Origin: Octopus sinensis
Taxonomy: Eukaryota
DNA: 64,000 bases
Assembly: GCF_006345805.1 (NCBI RefSeq)
Contig: NC_043000.1
Span: 25,730,001-25,794,000, forward strand
Reading direction: 5' to 3'
The position numbers were made by a program, and so were the translations under genes. This document shows positions 5,762-32,016 of this stretch, piece by piece (position 1 is the first letter of the stretch; each line of letters begins with the position of its first letter). Below the pieces are notes generated by a model. It searched no databases. It saw only the letters and a program-made list of their open reading frames with translations, and had not been told where the DNA came from.

Positions 5762-5969
5762 ATCCGATCTTACCGGAAATGCTTTACGATTTGGAACATC
5801 CCCAGCAATCGGAAAACGATTCCAATAATCCGAACGACACATTATCGTTGTCACAAGACAGGGACGTGAATAAAGACATAAATAACCAAGGTCGCTATGG
5901 TTACCTGATTGCAGCCAAGGGCATTGCACAGTTTGTATGTAATCCATTCGTCGGTTATATTGTAACAAG
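5762..5969 (+). CDS. SLC18A2-like: SLC18A-like exon 1/15 (end of TM1, luminal loop, TM2)
   Basis: ttttcag|AT CCG ATC TTA..ACA AG|gtaaat; PILPEMLYDLEH...GYLIAAKGIAQFVCNPFVGYIVT aligns to VMAT PIIPSYLY...GLLFASKATVQLITNPFIG. Confidence 0.92.
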
Positions 5970-6559
5970 GTAAATGCTTTTGCCAAGAGCTTTTTGTCCT
6001 TTTTTTTTAATTCCAAACTGATCTCATGAATCTCTTCTTTTCCATTTCCCTCTTGATCTTACTGTTCTCTTGCTTTGTCCTTCTTTCTACCCCACCTCTT
6101 CCCCAACCTTTCTCTCTCTCTTCTCTCTCTCTCTCTCTCTCTTTCTCTCTCTCTCATTAGACTGTGGCCATTTGGGGGCACCCGCTTGAAGGGGTTTTAG
6201 TCGAACGAATCGACTCTAGTACTTATTTTTATTAACTCTGGTACTATTCTGTCGGTCTCTTTTGCCGAACCGCCAGGTTATGAGTCATCAACAAACTAAT
6301 ACCGGTTGTCAAGTGATGGGGGCGGGGAGACAAGCACAAAGGTACAAATATATACACACACACACACATACATATATATATACACATATAATATATATAT
6401 ATATATATATTATACATATATATTATACATATACATATATATATATATATATATATATATAGAGAGAGAGAGAGAGAGAGAGAGAGAGAGAGAGAGAGAG
6501 AGAGAGAGAGAGAGAGAGAGGTCATCATATATATATATCTCAAAATTCAGATAAACAAA

Positions 6560-6960
6560 GTTCTTTTTTAATCGAAAATATTCTCTCCTTCATTTTCTAA
6601 AATACTCTTCCATCTATCTAATAGACTTACAAGGCCCCTCTTTCAAAATACTCCTCCAGTACTGTTCTGACCTCGTCTACAGAATTCATGTTTTTTCTGT
6701 CCAAATGATTTTGAAGACTGCGGAATAAATGATACTCAGATGGGGCAATGTCCGGCGAATATGCTGCGTGGAGCAGCCTTTCCCATCCAAATTGCTCCAG
6801 ACATTGGAGTGTCATTCTCACTGTATGTGGCCAAACAAAATCGGCTACTGATTACTGATAAAGCAATTAGAAACGCTGAAACTTATCAAACTGATCTCCT
6901 TTTTCTGACCACGGAGAAAAAAAAATGTTTTCACTTAGTGTCTGTTTTTCACAACTAAGA
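6560..6960 (-). mobile_element. Mariner transposase relic
   Basis: LLHAAYSPDIAPSEYHLFRSLQNHL (YSPDLAP motif). Confidence 0.8.
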
Positions 6961-7011
6961 GGAGATTGTCAGACTGGAAATAATTGATCTGCAAGAATTT
7001 GTACTTATATG

Positions 7012-7845
7012 TTTCTTTATTACCCACAAGGGGGCAAACACAGGAGGGACAAACAAGGACAGACAAACGGATTAAGTCGATTACGTCGACCCCAGTACGT
7101 AACTGGTACTTAATTTATCGACCCCGAAAGGATGCAAGGCAAAGTCGATCTCGGCGGAATTTGAACTCAGAACGTCAAGACAGACGAAATACGGCTACGT
7201 ATTCGCCCGGCGTGCTAACGATTCTGCCAGCTCGCCGCCTAATTTATATTGTTAGCACACCGGGCGAAATGCTTAGCAGTATTTCGTCTGCCGCTACGTT
7301 CTGAGTTCAAATTCCGCCGAGGTCAACTTTGCCTTTCATCCTTTCGGGGTCGGTTAAATAAGTACCAGTTACGCACTGGGGTCGATGTAATCGACTTAAT
7401 CCGTTTGTCTGTCCTTGTTTGTCCTCTCTGTGTTTAGCCCGTTGTGGGTGGTAAAAAAATATGTATTTCGTCTGCCGCTACATTCTGAGTTCAAATTCCG
7501 CCGAGGTCGATTTTACCTTTCATCCTTTCGGGGTTGATAAATTAAGTACCATGTTACGCACTGGGGTCGATATAATCGACTTAATCCCGTTGTCTGTCCT
7601 TGTTTGTAACCTCTATGTTTAGCCCCGTATGGGCAATAAAGAAATAAGAAACGTTAGCACGCCGAGCGAAATGCTTAGCAGTATTTCGTCTGTCTTTATG
7701 TTCTGAGTTCAAATGCCACCGGGGTCGACTTTGCCTTTCTTCATTTCGGGGTCTATAAATTAAGTCAATTTCGTACTGGGGTCGATCTAATCGACTACCC
7801 CACTCCCCAAATATTTCGGGCCTTGTGCCTAGAGTAGAAAAGAAC
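7012..7845. mobile_element. Cluster of four SINE family B copies (one -, three +)
   Basis: Core ctgagttcaaattccgccgaggtcgactttgcc. Further copies at about 1-76, 11815-12190, 18890-19090, 20765-20990, 42010-42150, 53120-53340, 57285-57470. Confidence 0.8.
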
Positions 7846-7892
7846 ATATCATTTCTGCTGTTTTTCAACTGCACCATTTTTCTTGTTTTCAG

Positions 7893-7951
7893 ATTTGGTT
7901 ATCGGAAGCCGATGTTGTTTGGTAGCTTGGTCCTTCTCCTCTCCACATTAG
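7893..7951 (+). CDS. SLC18A2-like: SLC18A-like exon 2/15 (TM3)
   Basis: gttttcag|..TTA G|gtatgt; RFGYRKPMLFGSLVLLLSTL, 59 nt. Confidence 0.92.
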
Positions 7952-8975
7952 GTATGTTTATACTTTCTAATCACCCTATTTCGTACCCAAATAGGCAGCT
8001 CTAGATTAAATATTAAGCAAAATACGCACGCGCTTAGAGAATCAAGGGAAGATTGGGCATCAGAGAAACGGTAAATAGTTTACGGCACAAGAGAAATCCC
8101 TTTAAACTTGGGATAATATTCGGATGCCTTATATCTACCAAGTATAGAATCAGATGTGTTACGTAAGATTAATGTTAAGCATCTGATCAAAGACTTTGAA
8201 ATCTATATTAATAAAAACGAAATTCTGTCTGTCCGATGGGAACCCTGTATCTCATTTGCTCAACATAGACATATTATGCCCTTTTTGGAATCAAGATGAT
8301 CCCGGAATTGAAAATCTGCTCTTCATTTGGTTCTTGAACATCTAGCATTTGGATCTGATTTAAAAGCATTTGGATTGCTATTTCTAGCAGGTAAAGCTTG
8401 GCTGATTCACGCCGTCTTGCTTGGTGTTTGTCAACAATAATTACAACCATCACAGCCAACACCAGCACCACCATCACCATCAGCAGCAGTGTAACATTAC
8501 ACTCGTAGTTAGAACTTGGGGAGAATGAGTTTGGTACGAAAATATAAGCTCTATTGTACGGTCTGAGACGGTTTGACACAGCTGTTTTGGCTCCGTCTAT
8601 TTGGCATCGCTGATTCGATGCTGACTTATTTGACATCACTTTTGTGCCCTTTTGGGACCATAAAAATGGATAGGTGGATAGACAATACCAACCCTAAACT
8701 TATTTCAGTTATATTCCGACCTCTAAATATTTTTCAACTTTTCTTCTTTCCTGATATTTCATTCATCTGTTTCCTTCGTTCTGTTTTCTTCATTGATCCA
8801 AAAACCATTCTACTAAGGCGTTTCAACCATCGTAGCAAGTAATCAATTACCTTAGCCTTGTCTCTGTTAAAATAGACACATTTTCTCCGCTCCTTTTTAA
8901 CATAGCCATTCCTTAAAAATCTGTCGCGACACCAATTTGATATTTGAAAATTCCTTGTGGTTTTTCTCTCGCCAG

Positions 8976-29700: not shown

Positions 29701-29707
29701 TATTATT

Positions 29708-30405
29708 ATTATTATTATTATTATCATCATCATTCAGTAGTTTTATTTTTATATCGTGCTTTCACTTCACTGCCGAGCACAGCTCTGTGTGCCTTGGGTA
29801 TGTGCTGTGATTTGTTGTGATGTTCTGATGGTTATTGTATGGAAAGTGTTCTGTGTAGGATGTGTGCAGTGCCTAGTAGTGCAATTTTCTGTATGTTATA
29901 TGTGTTTATAAGTCCTGGTGTTTTGTTTATGTATTTGTCTGGATATTTTTTTATCATGCCTAATGCACCTACTATGATAGGAATTGTTTCTGCTTTTAGA
30001 TTCCACATTCTAGTTACCTCTATTTCCAGGTCTTTGTATTTTGAAAGTTTCTCCATTTCTTTTAGAGACACGTTGTCATCAGCTGGTATTGATACATCAA
30101 TTAGAAAGCATTTTTTTCTTCATGATCTCTGACAACTATATCTGGTCTGTTGGCCTTAATTTCTCTATCTGTGTGTATTGGTATATCCCAGAGTATGGTT
30201 GCTTTCTCGTTTTCTGTGACCTTTTCTGGTGTGTGTCTATACCATCTTTTTTCTGTTGTTATTCCATAATGTTGGCATAGCTTCCAGTGTATGTAGCTCC
30301 CAACTCAGTCGTGTCTGTGAATATATTCCTTCTTAGCCAGGACTGGGCTATAATGATATTATAATAATAATAATAATAATAATAATAATAATAATAATAT
30401 TATTA
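29708..30405 (-). mobile_element. Same LINE fragment, tandem copy 2 (period 708 bp)
   Basis: Differs from copy 1 by 3 substitutions and one T in a homopolymer that frameshifts it. Confidence 0.85.
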
Positions 30406-31462
30406 TTATTATTATTATTATTATTATTATTATTGAATGAGAGAGCAGTGCATTGGGGTAAAATATACCTGTCTGATAAGGGTACACCAGGCACATGCAT
30501 CACAACAACTACATGTGTGTGACATGGGTATCACATGTCAAGATAAGCAGTTCATGACCACACACACACACACACACACACATACATACACACACATACA
30601 CACACATACACACACACACACACCACACACACACACACACACACACATACATACATGCATTGCATAGCACAGGCATGGTTGTGTGGTTGTGAAGTTTGCT
30701 TCCCAACCCTGTGGCTTCAAGTTCAGTCTCACTCCATAGCACCTTGAGCAAATATCAGCTAATGTAGACCTGAGACAAGCAAGAACTTTTCAGTGGATTT
30801 GGTAGACAGTAACTGAACAATACACACACACACACACACACACATTTATACATACATGTACATCATCATCATCATCATCATCATCGTTTAGCGTCCGTTT
30901 TCCATGCTAGCATGGGTTGGACGGTTCTACTGGGGTCTGTGAAGCCAGAAGGCTTCATCAGGCCCAGTCAAATCTGGCAGTGTTTCTACGGCTGGATGCC
31001 CTTCCTATATATATACATATGCATATATATATATAAATATGTATGTATATATGTATTTATGTATGTCTTCCATTTTTTTAATATTATAAATCTTCCACTG
31101 AGGAGGTAGCTGGTTTCCAACAAAGATACACGGTTTCATCTTTGGGAGACAAATTCACATTTGGAACTTGAGAAAGTCTTGCATATTTTTACTGTTCCAC
31201 TCACAGATTGCACTTGTAATGTACAAATTAGCTGATCGATTTCTCTTTCTGAAAGTATGTCTGTATTTTTCTATGTATGGGGCTGCTTTTCTATCTACTG
31301 AAGTCACTCACAAGACATTATTTGGCTGTGGGTTGTAGCCATGTGCCTTTGAGTCTAAACTCAAAAGCACATGGCTGAGAAATGAACTTTTCAAACATTA
31401 TGTGCTATGACTGCACAACATATATACATATATATATATATATATATATATATATATATATA

Positions 31463-31680
31463 CACGAGTGTGAGGCAAAAAGTAATGCCATTTTGTTTAG
31501 GACAGGTAAAATATACCAACGCAGGAACATGTATCATGCATCAAAATGAAGCTGGTCCTCTGTGGATCGCATCCCTACTTCTCAACATTGTCACCGTTTC
31601 TCTCAATAGCAATGTTCCATATGAACACTTGTTTAGAGCTCCATGGCCAACACTTTGAACATTTGTAATGGATTACCTAC
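31463..31680 (-). mobile_element. Mariner 3'-end relic, same family as 17760-18075
   Basis: Reverse-complement similarity to 17930-18075. Confidence 0.65.
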
Positions 31681-31744
31681 TTCATTGCTAATAAAGCATA
31701 CTTGATATCTCCCTTGGTGCGTGACATCGTGGCCACCCTGTTGA

Positions 31745-31925
31745 TATCTATTAGCACTATCATCATTTTTGTTATCATTATTGTTATCATTATTGTTATA
31801 TCATATTATCATTATTGCTATCATTATTATTATCATTATTGTTACCATTATTGTTGTTATATTGTTATCATCGTCATTGTCATCATCATTGTTGTTGTCA
31901 TCGTTATTGTTGTTATTATTTCAGT
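31745..31925. repeat. Degenerate (ATT/ATC/GTT)n tract just upstream of the last SLC18A-like exon
   Basis: Direct reading. Confidence 0.85.
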
Positions 31926-31950
31926 GATTATGTCATTTTCTTTTAACCAG

Positions 31951-32016
31951 ATCGACAACGAAAAGGCTCCATTATTGAAGGACAACGACAGTTCAGCAGG
32001 AAATCCCTCAGCATAA
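31951..32016 (+). CDS. SLC18A2-like: SLC18A-like exon 15/15 (C-terminal tail, stop)
   Basis: ttttaaccag|ATC..GCA TAA; IDNEKAPLLKDNDSSAGNPSA*, phase 0, contains [DE]xxxLL. Confidence 0.85.
   Translation: MDNEKAPLLKDNDSSAGNPSA

Follow-up and report, generated by a model that had tools for sequence, protein, structure and literature searches.

The window analysed here, a stretch of 64,000 nucleotides that forms part of Octopus sinensis chromosome CM016862.1, contains on its + strand a gene running from 5762 to 32016. Fifteen coding exons with GT-AG introns (Table 1) were joined into an exact spliced reconstruction of residues 48-459 of RefSeq XP_029634522.2, titled "synaptic vesicular amine transporter-like". 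The reconstruction starts at base 5762, ends with a TAA stop at 32014-32016 and shows canonical AG/GT borders and no internal stop, as in the preliminary description of this locus, which had reported fifteen stop-free exons from the same start. The seven codons for which that description gave positions all read as claimed on the + strand, and 18 further key residues were placed in window coordinates. The exon encoding TM1 was not found in the window; it is located 4.7 kb upstream, at window coordinates -4835 to -4694, and encodes residues 1-47 with the equivalent of D33 (human VMAT2 numbering for conserved positions). As the window truncates the gene at its 5' end, and as one more upstream coding exon is present in the models for O. 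bimaculoides and Argonauta, the gene has 16-17 coding exons in all. The exon structure is identical in three octopods.

Table 1. Coding exons of the octopus transporter gene in the window, with key residues (corresponding human VMAT2 position and codon coordinates in brackets).
Encoded part	Coordinates	Strand	Residues and motifs	Basis
Residues 48-117: TM1 lumenal end, short lumenal loop 1, TM2	5762..5969	+	D48 (V41 position; first codon, split by the upstream intron); two N-x-S/T sequons in loop 1; I97 (F135 position, 5908-5910), K100 (K138, 5917-5919), Q104 (Q142)	exact protein match
TM3	7893..7951	+		AG/GT borders, exact protein match
TM4	8976..9059	+	R151 (R189, 9017-9019), Q154, S158; all in polar network 1	
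TM4-5 loop and TM5	10387..10479	+		spliced reconstruction
TM5 end and TM6	10847..10936	+	A224 (D262 position, 10930-10932); TM6 without acid	
Central cytoplasmic loop	12471..12511	+		spliced reconstruction
Loop and TM7 start	14747..14804	+		spliced reconstruction
TM7	16684..16779	+	N265 (N305), D267 (G307 position, 16707-16709), L272 (E312, 16722-16724), A273 (P313, 16725-16727), R278 (W318, 16740-16742)	
TM8	18567..18645	+	V294 (F334), S298 (S338), Y301 (Y341)	
TM9	19290..19341	+		spliced reconstruction
TM10 first half	20133..20196	+	T348 (N388 position)	
TM10 end to TM11	21237..21356	+	S359 (D399, 21245-21247), Q363 (M403), Y382 (Y422), D386 (D426, 21326-21328), V389 (F429), M393 (Y433)	
TM11 end	25033..25078	+		spliced reconstruction
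TM12	28849..28930	+	D420 (D460 position)	
Last exon: cytoplasmic tail and TAA stop	31951..32016	+	acidic dileucine motif EKAPLL (31960-31977)	

The product matches Pfam MFS_1 (E 2e-46) and has the 12-helix MFS fold, with 12 long helices in the AlphaFold model (pLDDT 82.5, pTM 0.81). Foldseek ranked human VMAT2 and VMAT1 first, at rmsd 2.3-2.4 A and a TM-score (target-length normalisation) of 0.92; VAChT came next and NorA after it. In HMMER searches VMAT2 was matched at E 1e-82 (281 bits), VAChT at 4e-50 (174 bits) and the next family, NorA, at 4e-9 (39 bits), while the protein collection yielded 160 matches at E<=1e-30, of which those examined were all SLC18-like. Identity to VMAT1 and VMAT2 (SLC18A1/A2, vesicular monoamine/2H+ antiporters), which have the same 12-TM fold, is 34-36%. 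VAChT (SLC18A3), of the same superfamily and fold, is more distant than VMAT2; D33, K138, R189 and D426 are common to both proteins, but the VAChT signature W334/F338/H341 is missing from the octopus protein, and VAChT retains E309 and D398 (equivalent to E312 and D399), which the octopus protein does not. The fold, the nearest sequence family, D33, the K138/D426 pair, R189 and the tail dileucine motif are thus those of SLC18A, whereas the TM7 Glu (E312/E309) and the TM10 Asp (D399/D398) are both missing. A canonical VMAT ortholog would belong to a single bilaterian gene with ~60% identity across phyla. The VMATs of molluscs, annelids, insects and vertebrates show 57-78% identity to that of Haliotis; the octopus protein, at 36%, falls outside this range.

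Residue correspondences were taken from HMMER, from MAFFT on ~160 SLC18 proteins and from L-INS-i on curated groups, and the VMAT2 residue numbers of the preliminary description all agree with the PDB human VMAT2 chain 8ucj_A. The replacements E312L, P313A, W318R and D399S and the new Asp at G307 fall in the same register in the three alignments and in the AlphaFold/Foldseek comparison. The alignments also agree on the retention of K138, Q142, R189, N305, Y341, Y422 and D426; together with S338, R357 and D33 (encoded upstream of the window) and the acidic dileucine motif of the tail, these are features that the octopus protein has like VMAT1 and VMAT2. For the proposed D262 to Ala change the loss of the TM6 acid holds, although the exact residue pairing depends on the placement of a two-residue gap in HMMER. 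An alternative register that would rescue the acids was ruled out by the three alignments and by a survey of the predicted helices, in which no Asp or Glu was found in mid-membrane TM10, no acid in TM6 and only D267 in TM7. Further differences from VMAT comprise N388T and N34S, Ile/Arg/Val in place of the lumenal gate F135/W318/F334, Val/Met/Gln in place of the cytosolic-gate residues F429/Y433/M403, and a TM7 without the P313 and G307 of the flexible VMAT helix. Lumenal loop 1 is much shorter than in VMAT, and Asn occupies the position of C324, the loop disulfide partner in VMAT2.

A neighbour-joining tree (Kimura distances, 100 bootstraps) placed the octopus protein in a clade supported by 99 of 100 replicates, comprising Octopus, Argonauta, the cephalopod sequence P0178, two chiton copies, Owenia, Dimorphilus, Capitella and two more sequences; its sister group was not resolved, with deep-node bootstraps near zero. 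Placement in a VMAT lineage, as originally proposed, is supported only loosely: VMATs score best, but the deep branching between VMAT, VAChT and an arthropod third group is without support in this tree. Signatures were counted in 11 full-length clade members and in 41 VMAT, VAChT and third-group sequences. E312L, P313A and D399S/T are fixed in the clade (11/11; Ser in ten members and Thr in one at the D399 position), whereas positions 312, 313 and 399 hold E, P and D throughout the VMAT, VAChT and third-group sequences (Glu at 312 in 41/41). All 11 members keep D33, K138, Q142, R189, Q192, S196, N305, Y341, Y422 and D426. Argonauta, Liolophura and Capitella each carry a canonical VMAT with the full acid set in addition to a clade member which, together with the low identity to Haliotis VMAT, bears out the view of a paralog and not a VMAT ortholog. 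A cephalopod-specific system, as had been suggested, is contradicted by chitons and annelids, which are fixed for the same substitutions, so that the change is older than the mollusc-annelid split. No gastropod or bivalve members were found.

The new TM7 Asp, put forward earlier as a feature of rewired chemistry, is present in octopus (D267), but position 307 is Asp in only eight of the 11 members, Asn in two (both annelids) and His in one, and such variation leaves no conserved replacement proton site. By simple helical periodicity, D267 would lie on the face of the predicted TM7 opposite N305, I308 and E312.

The tail motif EKAPLL (residues 442-447) has its aligned counterpart in the sequence EEK..[IL][IL] of the VMAT tail. 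A [DE]xxxL[LI] motif is found at the VMAT position in seven clade members (four cephalopods and three others) and is absent or variant in the other four. SLC18 descends from the DHA12 drug/H+ antiporters, and NorA and QacA are detectable relatives of the octopus protein. This would fit a protein that does not load synaptic or secretory vesicles and instead acts on the plasma membrane, in the lysosome or in some other organelle as an MFS exporter or exchanger, for instance in xenobiotic or metabolite efflux like the DHA12 proteins; a dileucine motif that is also used in lysosomal sorting, and is imperfect in part of the clade, points the same way. We consider this unlikely, as VMAT and VAChT are far closer than the drug exporters (281 vs 39 bits for VMAT2 and NorA) and the tail motif and the endocytosis motif of VMAT are homologous in position.

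Brooks et al. are said to have described Drosophila portabella (prt) in 2011 as an SLC18A-type protein, putatively a third vesicular transporter, whose substrate is not known, and the octopus gene follows the same concept of a third transporter alongside VMAT and VAChT. The arthropod third group sampled here (Homarus, Macrobrachium, Calliphora, Wyeomyia), presumably the portabella group, keeps E312, P313, W318 and D399 and shows Gln at D426 and Thr at N305. It lies apart from the spiralian clade in the tree, in which deep nodes are without support, and carries the opposite signature; separate clustering and opposite signatures therefore suggest two independent departures from the canonical site. 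"VMAT" sequences of Xenopus laevis and Helobdella robusta with Arg or His at W318 have been regarded as VMAT2 variants of individual species and were not set apart as a subfamily (Dalton et al. 2024). A Xenopus sequence (P0048) has Arg at this position like octopus and has also lost E312 and D399 (Gln and Gly); it pairs with P0061 outside the spiralian clade, and a distant group (P0042, P0115, P0120, P0133, P0148) branches well away from it.

The gene is under purifying selection: comparison with O. bimaculoides gives a dN/dS of 0.125 (dS 0.10) and that with Argonauta 0.06-0.07, where a pseudogene would approach 1. Spliced mRNA was found for the cephalopod ortholog P0178, as an intron-free coding sequence in contigs of up to 2.6 kb from 67 sequencing-run assemblies; a full-length Octopus transcript was not found in the protein collection. 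The latter, and the unusual residues, might suggest a pseudogene in decay or an error of annotation, but the 15 uninterrupted exons, their canonical splice sites, the conserved exon structure, the orthologs in two phyla, the cephalopod mRNAs and the low dN/dS make this hardly credible, and it was rejected on dN/dS and conservation. Literature records of "vat1" were not accepted as expression evidence; they most likely concern the unrelated VAT-1 homolog, since the E. berryi atlas separates Vat1l, in glutamatergic cells, from Vmat2-2, in dopaminergic cells (PMC12240821).

In VMAT2 the TM1-TM2-TM4-TM11 polar network is linked to proton-driven conformational switching. Its residues (D33, K138, Q142, R189, Q192, S196, D426) are kept here, as are the fold and the VMAT-like sorting motif, and the proton gradient of an acidic vesicle, secretory or synaptic, would therefore most likely drive antiport into it, with vesicular residence suggested by homology and the short tail motif, and proton coupling presumably running through the retained network. 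Both carboxylates that anchor the amine and accept protons in VMAT2 are replaced (E312 by Leu, D399 by Ser/Thr), and so is their partner N388 (by Thr). The three aromatic lumenal-gate residues are likewise replaced (F135 by Ile/Val, W318 by Arg, F334 by Val), and TM1 has gained a conserved acid at its lumenal end (V41 to Asp/Glu). The lumenal gate may thus be charged instead of hydrophobic, with D48 and R278 as a candidate pair, and the cavity would be less acidic and more aliphatic, probably with fewer protons exchanged per cycle.

Two of the four sites proposed for protonation are lost, as is each of the three aromatic residues of the lumenal gate, which could indicate a non-transporting derivative, receptor-like, regulatory or an uncoupled leak, that kept the fold and lost the catalytic cycle. 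We regard this as very improbable, as the gating and network residues that are left, like the MFS signature loops, have stayed invariant over more than 500 million years, as expected of a working alternating-access transporter.

In VMAT2, D399 and E312 form a salt bridge with the substrate amine, and mutation of either strongly reduces or abolishes transport (PMC10959523, PMC11695631). With both acids missing, canonical monoamine/2H+ antiport is unlikely, in line with the non-canonical transport proposed at the outset. The Arg at W318 does not speak for a broken gate, since serotonin transport by human VMAT2 W318R matches that of the wild type (PMC10959523). This tolerance, the VMATs as nearest structures, the retention of D33, K138, R189, Y341, Y422 and D426, and a polar or ionisable residue at position 307 in all members would also suit a vesicular transporter that still carries cationic amines (monoamines, trace amines, polyamines or a quaternary amine), with D33, and D267 in molluscs, as counter-charges and an altered stoichiometry or affinity. 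D33 has a role in amine recognition in some models. Such a transporter is possible but doubtful, given that the salt-bridge acids are replaced in every clade member when the loss of one is crippling in VMAT2, that Asn at 307 in the two annelids means the charge is not conserved, and that a canonical VMAT in the same species leaves nothing to compel the paralog to keep the amine job.

Taken together, we moderately favour, as a whole, a functional 12-helix MFS transporter of an ancient, previously undescribed spiralian SLC18A subfamily with a changed substrate site. To judge from its residues, a less acidic, more aliphatic cavity would most likely take neither a classical monoamine nor acetylcholine, and loss of both amine-holding acids in an old paralog common to chitons and annelids suggests that it probably carries a different cargo. 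More tentatively, and with clearly less confidence, it may be a vesicular loader, ancestral to molluscs and annelids and still kept by cephalopods, for a non-amine or atypical small-molecule transmitter or a secretory product, built as a salt-bridge-gated VMAT variant with a single carboxylate network.

Under its RefSeq name, which in O. bimaculoides is "synaptic vesicular amine transporter", without "-like", the gene may be taken for VMAT where single-cell atlases use it to mark monoaminergic cells.

The small molecules available for release from a neuron or secretory cell are set by its vesicular transporters, and to our knowledge each newly found transporter has led either to a transmitter system, as with VGLUT, VNUT and VPAT, or to an unanswered question, as with portabella. 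A subfamily older than the mollusc-annelid split that kept the VMAT scaffold, the proton-linked network and the sorting signal, and removed the amine-anchoring carboxylates, would represent a natural experiment in the rewiring of SLC18 substrate and proton coupling, and is a candidate lead to a signalling molecule still to be identified in the nervous or secretory tissues of cephalopods, chitons and annelids.

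RefSeq already holds a model of the transporter gene of the window, under a misleading name: a draft built from the evident exon ORFs recovered the 459-aa XP_029634522.2 (P0001), annotated as 'synaptic vesicular amine transporter-like [Octopus sinensis]'. A splice-junction search combined with exact peptide mapping gave a single splice solution of 15 coding exons on the + strand, encoding residues 48-459 of P0001 and the stop codon, with an AG acceptor preceded by a pyrimidine tract and a GT donor at the borders of all exons. The start, end and exon count of the preliminary description are exact for the window, but the 5' end of the gene falls outside it: the TM1 exon (aa 1-47) precedes the first base of the window by 4.7-4.8 kb. 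One extra upstream coding exon is likewise present in the O. bimaculoides and Argonauta models; in the O. vulgaris model P0008 (CAI9721916.1) the TM1 exon is skipped, which is probably a mis-annotation. In RefSeq the O. bimaculoides ortholog P0007 (XP_014778491.1) goes by 'synaptic vesicular amine transporter' without the '-like', and could therefore pass for a VMAT in marker lists.

Coding exons of the transporter gene in the window
Exon	Window positions	Strand	Evidence
1	5762-5969	+	peptide mapping
2	7893-7951	+	peptide mapping
3	8976-9059	+	peptide mapping
4	10387-10479	+	peptide mapping
5	10847-10936	+	peptide mapping
6	12471-12511	+	peptide mapping
7	14747-14804	+	peptide mapping
8	16684-16779	+	peptide mapping
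9	18567-18645	+	peptide mapping
10	19290-19341	+	peptide mapping
11	20133-20196	+	peptide mapping
12	21237-21356	+	peptide mapping
13	25033-25078	+	peptide mapping
14	28849-28930	+	peptide mapping
15	31951-32016	+	peptide mapping

The window has 38.8% G+C and is rich in microsatellites. Over the 42,016 comparable bases it matches chromosome CM016862.1 of Octopus sinensis assembly GCA_006345805.1 without a mismatch, its position 1 being chromosome base 25,730,001. A 160-aa ORF at 4562-5044 (- strand) carries the HTH_48 domain of Mos1/mariner transposases (Pfam E 1.7e-9) and represents a transposon remnant in the 10.4-kb intron that separates the TM1 exon from the first exon of the window (start 5762). 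The last transporter intron contains two tandem copies of a ~708-bp unit (28990-30387) that are 99-100% identical, which looks like a very recent local duplication. Downstream, a gene encoding a 413-aa G-patch/RRM protein is publicly annotated on the - strand, convergent with the transporter gene; its 3' end is in the window from ~41867 onward.

The transporter gene is functional, as had been proposed for an intact paralog. The codons compared came from a cephalopod mRNA (L001) and from three genomic loci, that of the window and those of O. bimaculoides (L010) and Argonauta hians (L009). By the Nei-Gojobori method dN/dS was 0.125 between O. sinensis and O. bimaculoides (12 nonsynonymous and 28 synonymous differences, dS 0.10) and 0.06-0.07 against Argonauta, where dS (~1.4) is near saturation. 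The three octopods share one exon structure. The 72%-identical ortholog P0178, which joins the octopods at 100% bootstrap, was found in contigs of up to 2.6 kb from 67 independent sequencing-run assemblies; its 1,458-nt CDS is uninterrupted although the gene has 16 introns, and it therefore represents a spliced mRNA. The AlphaFold model of the octopus protein is confident (pLDDT 82.5, pTM 0.81), shows 12 long helices and superposes on human VMAT2 and VMAT1 with a TM-score of 0.92 (normalised by target length) and an rmsd of 2.3-2.4 A, both outranking VAChT and bacterial NorA as structural matches.

All seven codons for which coordinates had been proposed were confirmed in the window sequence, 18 more key residues were placed in window coordinates, and the VMAT2 residues quoted earlier match the human chain 8ucj_A (PDB) at every number. 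The HMMER alignment with VMAT2 (E 1e-82) is nearly ungapped from TM2 to TM12. In VMAT2 and octopus numbering, respectively, the substitutions are E312→L272, P313→A273, W318→R278, D399→S359, F135→I97, F334→V294, F429→V389, Y433→M393 and G307→D267, while D33, K138, Q142, R189, N305, S338, Y341, R357, Y422, D426 and D460 are retained. VMAT2 D262 falls within a two-residue gap of this alignment, and TM6 of the octopus protein contains no acidic residue. Mid-membrane carboxylates in the AlphaFold helices are limited to D40 (TM1), D267 (TM7), D386 (TM11) and D420 (TM12), with none in TM10. Conservation of the acids in a different register, by which the proposed loss could have been explained away, is ruled out by the alignment and these carboxylate positions, and the loss of the acids stands.

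Of 1.84 billion representative proteins scanned exhaustively with HMMER, 160 matched at E<=1e-30, and in their joint alignment nearly all have E at 312 and D/E at 399. The exceptions include one tight group around the octopus protein, comprising Octopus sinensis, O. bimaculoides, O. vulgaris, Argonauta hians, the cephalopod mRNA P0178, two paralogs of the chiton Liolophura sinensis, the annelids Dimorphilus, Owenia and Capitella (three copies), and two further sequences. Neighbour-joining analysis of 111 near-full-length proteins supported this group with a bootstrap of 99/100; the deeper nodes give no placement. Argonauta, Liolophura and Capitella each have one canonical VMAT besides the orphan, so that the octopus gene is an old paralog rather than the VMAT ortholog; with Haliotis VMAT as query, the canonical VMATs of molluscs, annelids, insects and vertebrates showed 57-78% identity. 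The chiton and annelid members make the clade spiralian-wide, and not specific to cephalopods as had been envisaged. Neither search returned a gastropod or bivalve orphan, while the canonical VMATs of both were readily recovered, which suggests, within search sensitivity, that the orphan was lost in these two classes.

The subfamily is expanded in Capitella teleta, whose copies (P0011, P0038 and P0113) show H/Q/H at 307 and L/A/V at 312. An intron-free 1,470-nt ORF codes for the clade member P0179; this ORF, located on a genomic contig of 3.4 kb (L011, JAAUXW010222640.1), is either a retrogene or a cDNA-like sequence in GCA_013332895.1. Outside the clade, the vertebrate SLC18 pair P0048 (Xenopus laevis XP_018108987.1) and P0061, annotated as 'chromaffin granule amine transporter', has Q312, G399 and R318 and represents another divergent lineage without both acids; amphioxus P0025 has W312 and S399.

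Eleven full-length clade members were compared with 17 VMATs, 12 VAChTs and 12 members of an arthropod third group. At positions invariant elsewhere, E312→Leu, P313→Ala and D399→Ser/Thr are fixed in the clade (11/11 each), accompanied by N388→Thr and M403→Gln (both 10/11), N34→Ser (9/11), F135→Val/Ile, F334→Val/Ile, F429→Val, and V41→Asp/Glu in all ten members covering that position. D33, K138, Q142, R189, Q192, S196, N305, Y341, Y422 and D426 are retained in all eleven. Of the polar networks defined by Dalton et al. (PMC10959523), network 1 (TM1/4/11) is fully preserved, network 2 (E312-N388) is eliminated, and network 3 (N305-Y341-D399) keeps its hydrogen-bonding geometry and loses its titratable group. 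The tail of the octopus protein carries an acidic dileucine motif (EKAPLL, window 31960-31977) where VMATs have their endocytosis motif; an acidic dileucine motif is present in all four cephalopods and three other clade members.

Two substitutions had been given too much weight. The new TM7 Asp at position 307 (Asp in 8/11 members, Asn in 2/11, His in 1/11) is conserved as an acid only in molluscs and the two further sequences; simple helical periodicity would put D267 ~200 degrees away from N305 and ~140 degrees away from the 312 site, and it is not obviously on the cavity face. The W318 position is Arg in eight members and Glu, Asn or Gln in three. Since VMAT2 with W318R no longer binds dihydrotetrabenazine but retains full serotonin transport, this change alone is no defect, and Arg/His at 318 was already noted in 'VMAT2 from other species', e.g. 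Xenopus laevis, probably P0048, and Helobdella robusta (PMC10959523). Judged from sequence, Arg at 318 together with V41→Asp/Glu and the absence of the two phenylalanines of the gate suggests that a charged lumenal gate may replace the hydrophobic plug.

In VMAT2 structures D399, or alternatively E312, salt-bridges the substrate amine, and mutation of N305, E312, Y341 or D399 strongly reduces transport (PMC11695631). Serotonin transport is greatly reduced in E312Q, and in E312A transport and tetrabenazine binding are both reportedly lost (PMC10959523). Release and resetting have been proposed to be driven by protonation of E312, D399, D426 and possibly D33. The octopus protein is an intact, constrained MFS protein with a VMAT fold that retains the proton-linked TM1/2/4/11 network and lacks both amine-anchoring carboxylates. 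The core of the earlier interpretation, a functional paralog with a rewired site for which canonical monoamine/2H+ antiport is unlikely, is right. Alternating access would be powered by the vesicular proton gradient via D33/K138/D426, probably with fewer protons exchanged per cycle. Cargo would bind without need for the E312/D399 carboxylates, and the protein would therefore not be a classical monoamine or acetylcholine carrier.

The octopus protein is built, and would work, like SLC18A, but lacks the defining TM7 Glu and TM10 Asp and is therefore not classed as a VMAT. Drosophila portabella offers a conceptual precedent. The arthropod third group (crustaceans and dipterans), presumably portabella, is separate from the spiralian clade in the neighbour-joining tree and, unlike it, keeps E312, W318 and D399 and has D426→Gln instead; with these opposite changes it would represent a different solution. 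Broad surveys of monoamine-pathway evolution recognised only VMAT and VAChT clades within SLC18 (PMC10244343), and a bivalve study reported a single VMAT in all protostomes that it analysed (bioRxiv 10.64898/2026.08.17.745212). No published description of this subfamily was found in the literature searched. The new element is that a conserved orphan subfamily, with E312L, P313A and D399S/T as its defining changes, is recognised; interest in it would grow considerably should expression and transport assays reveal a distinct vesicular cargo.
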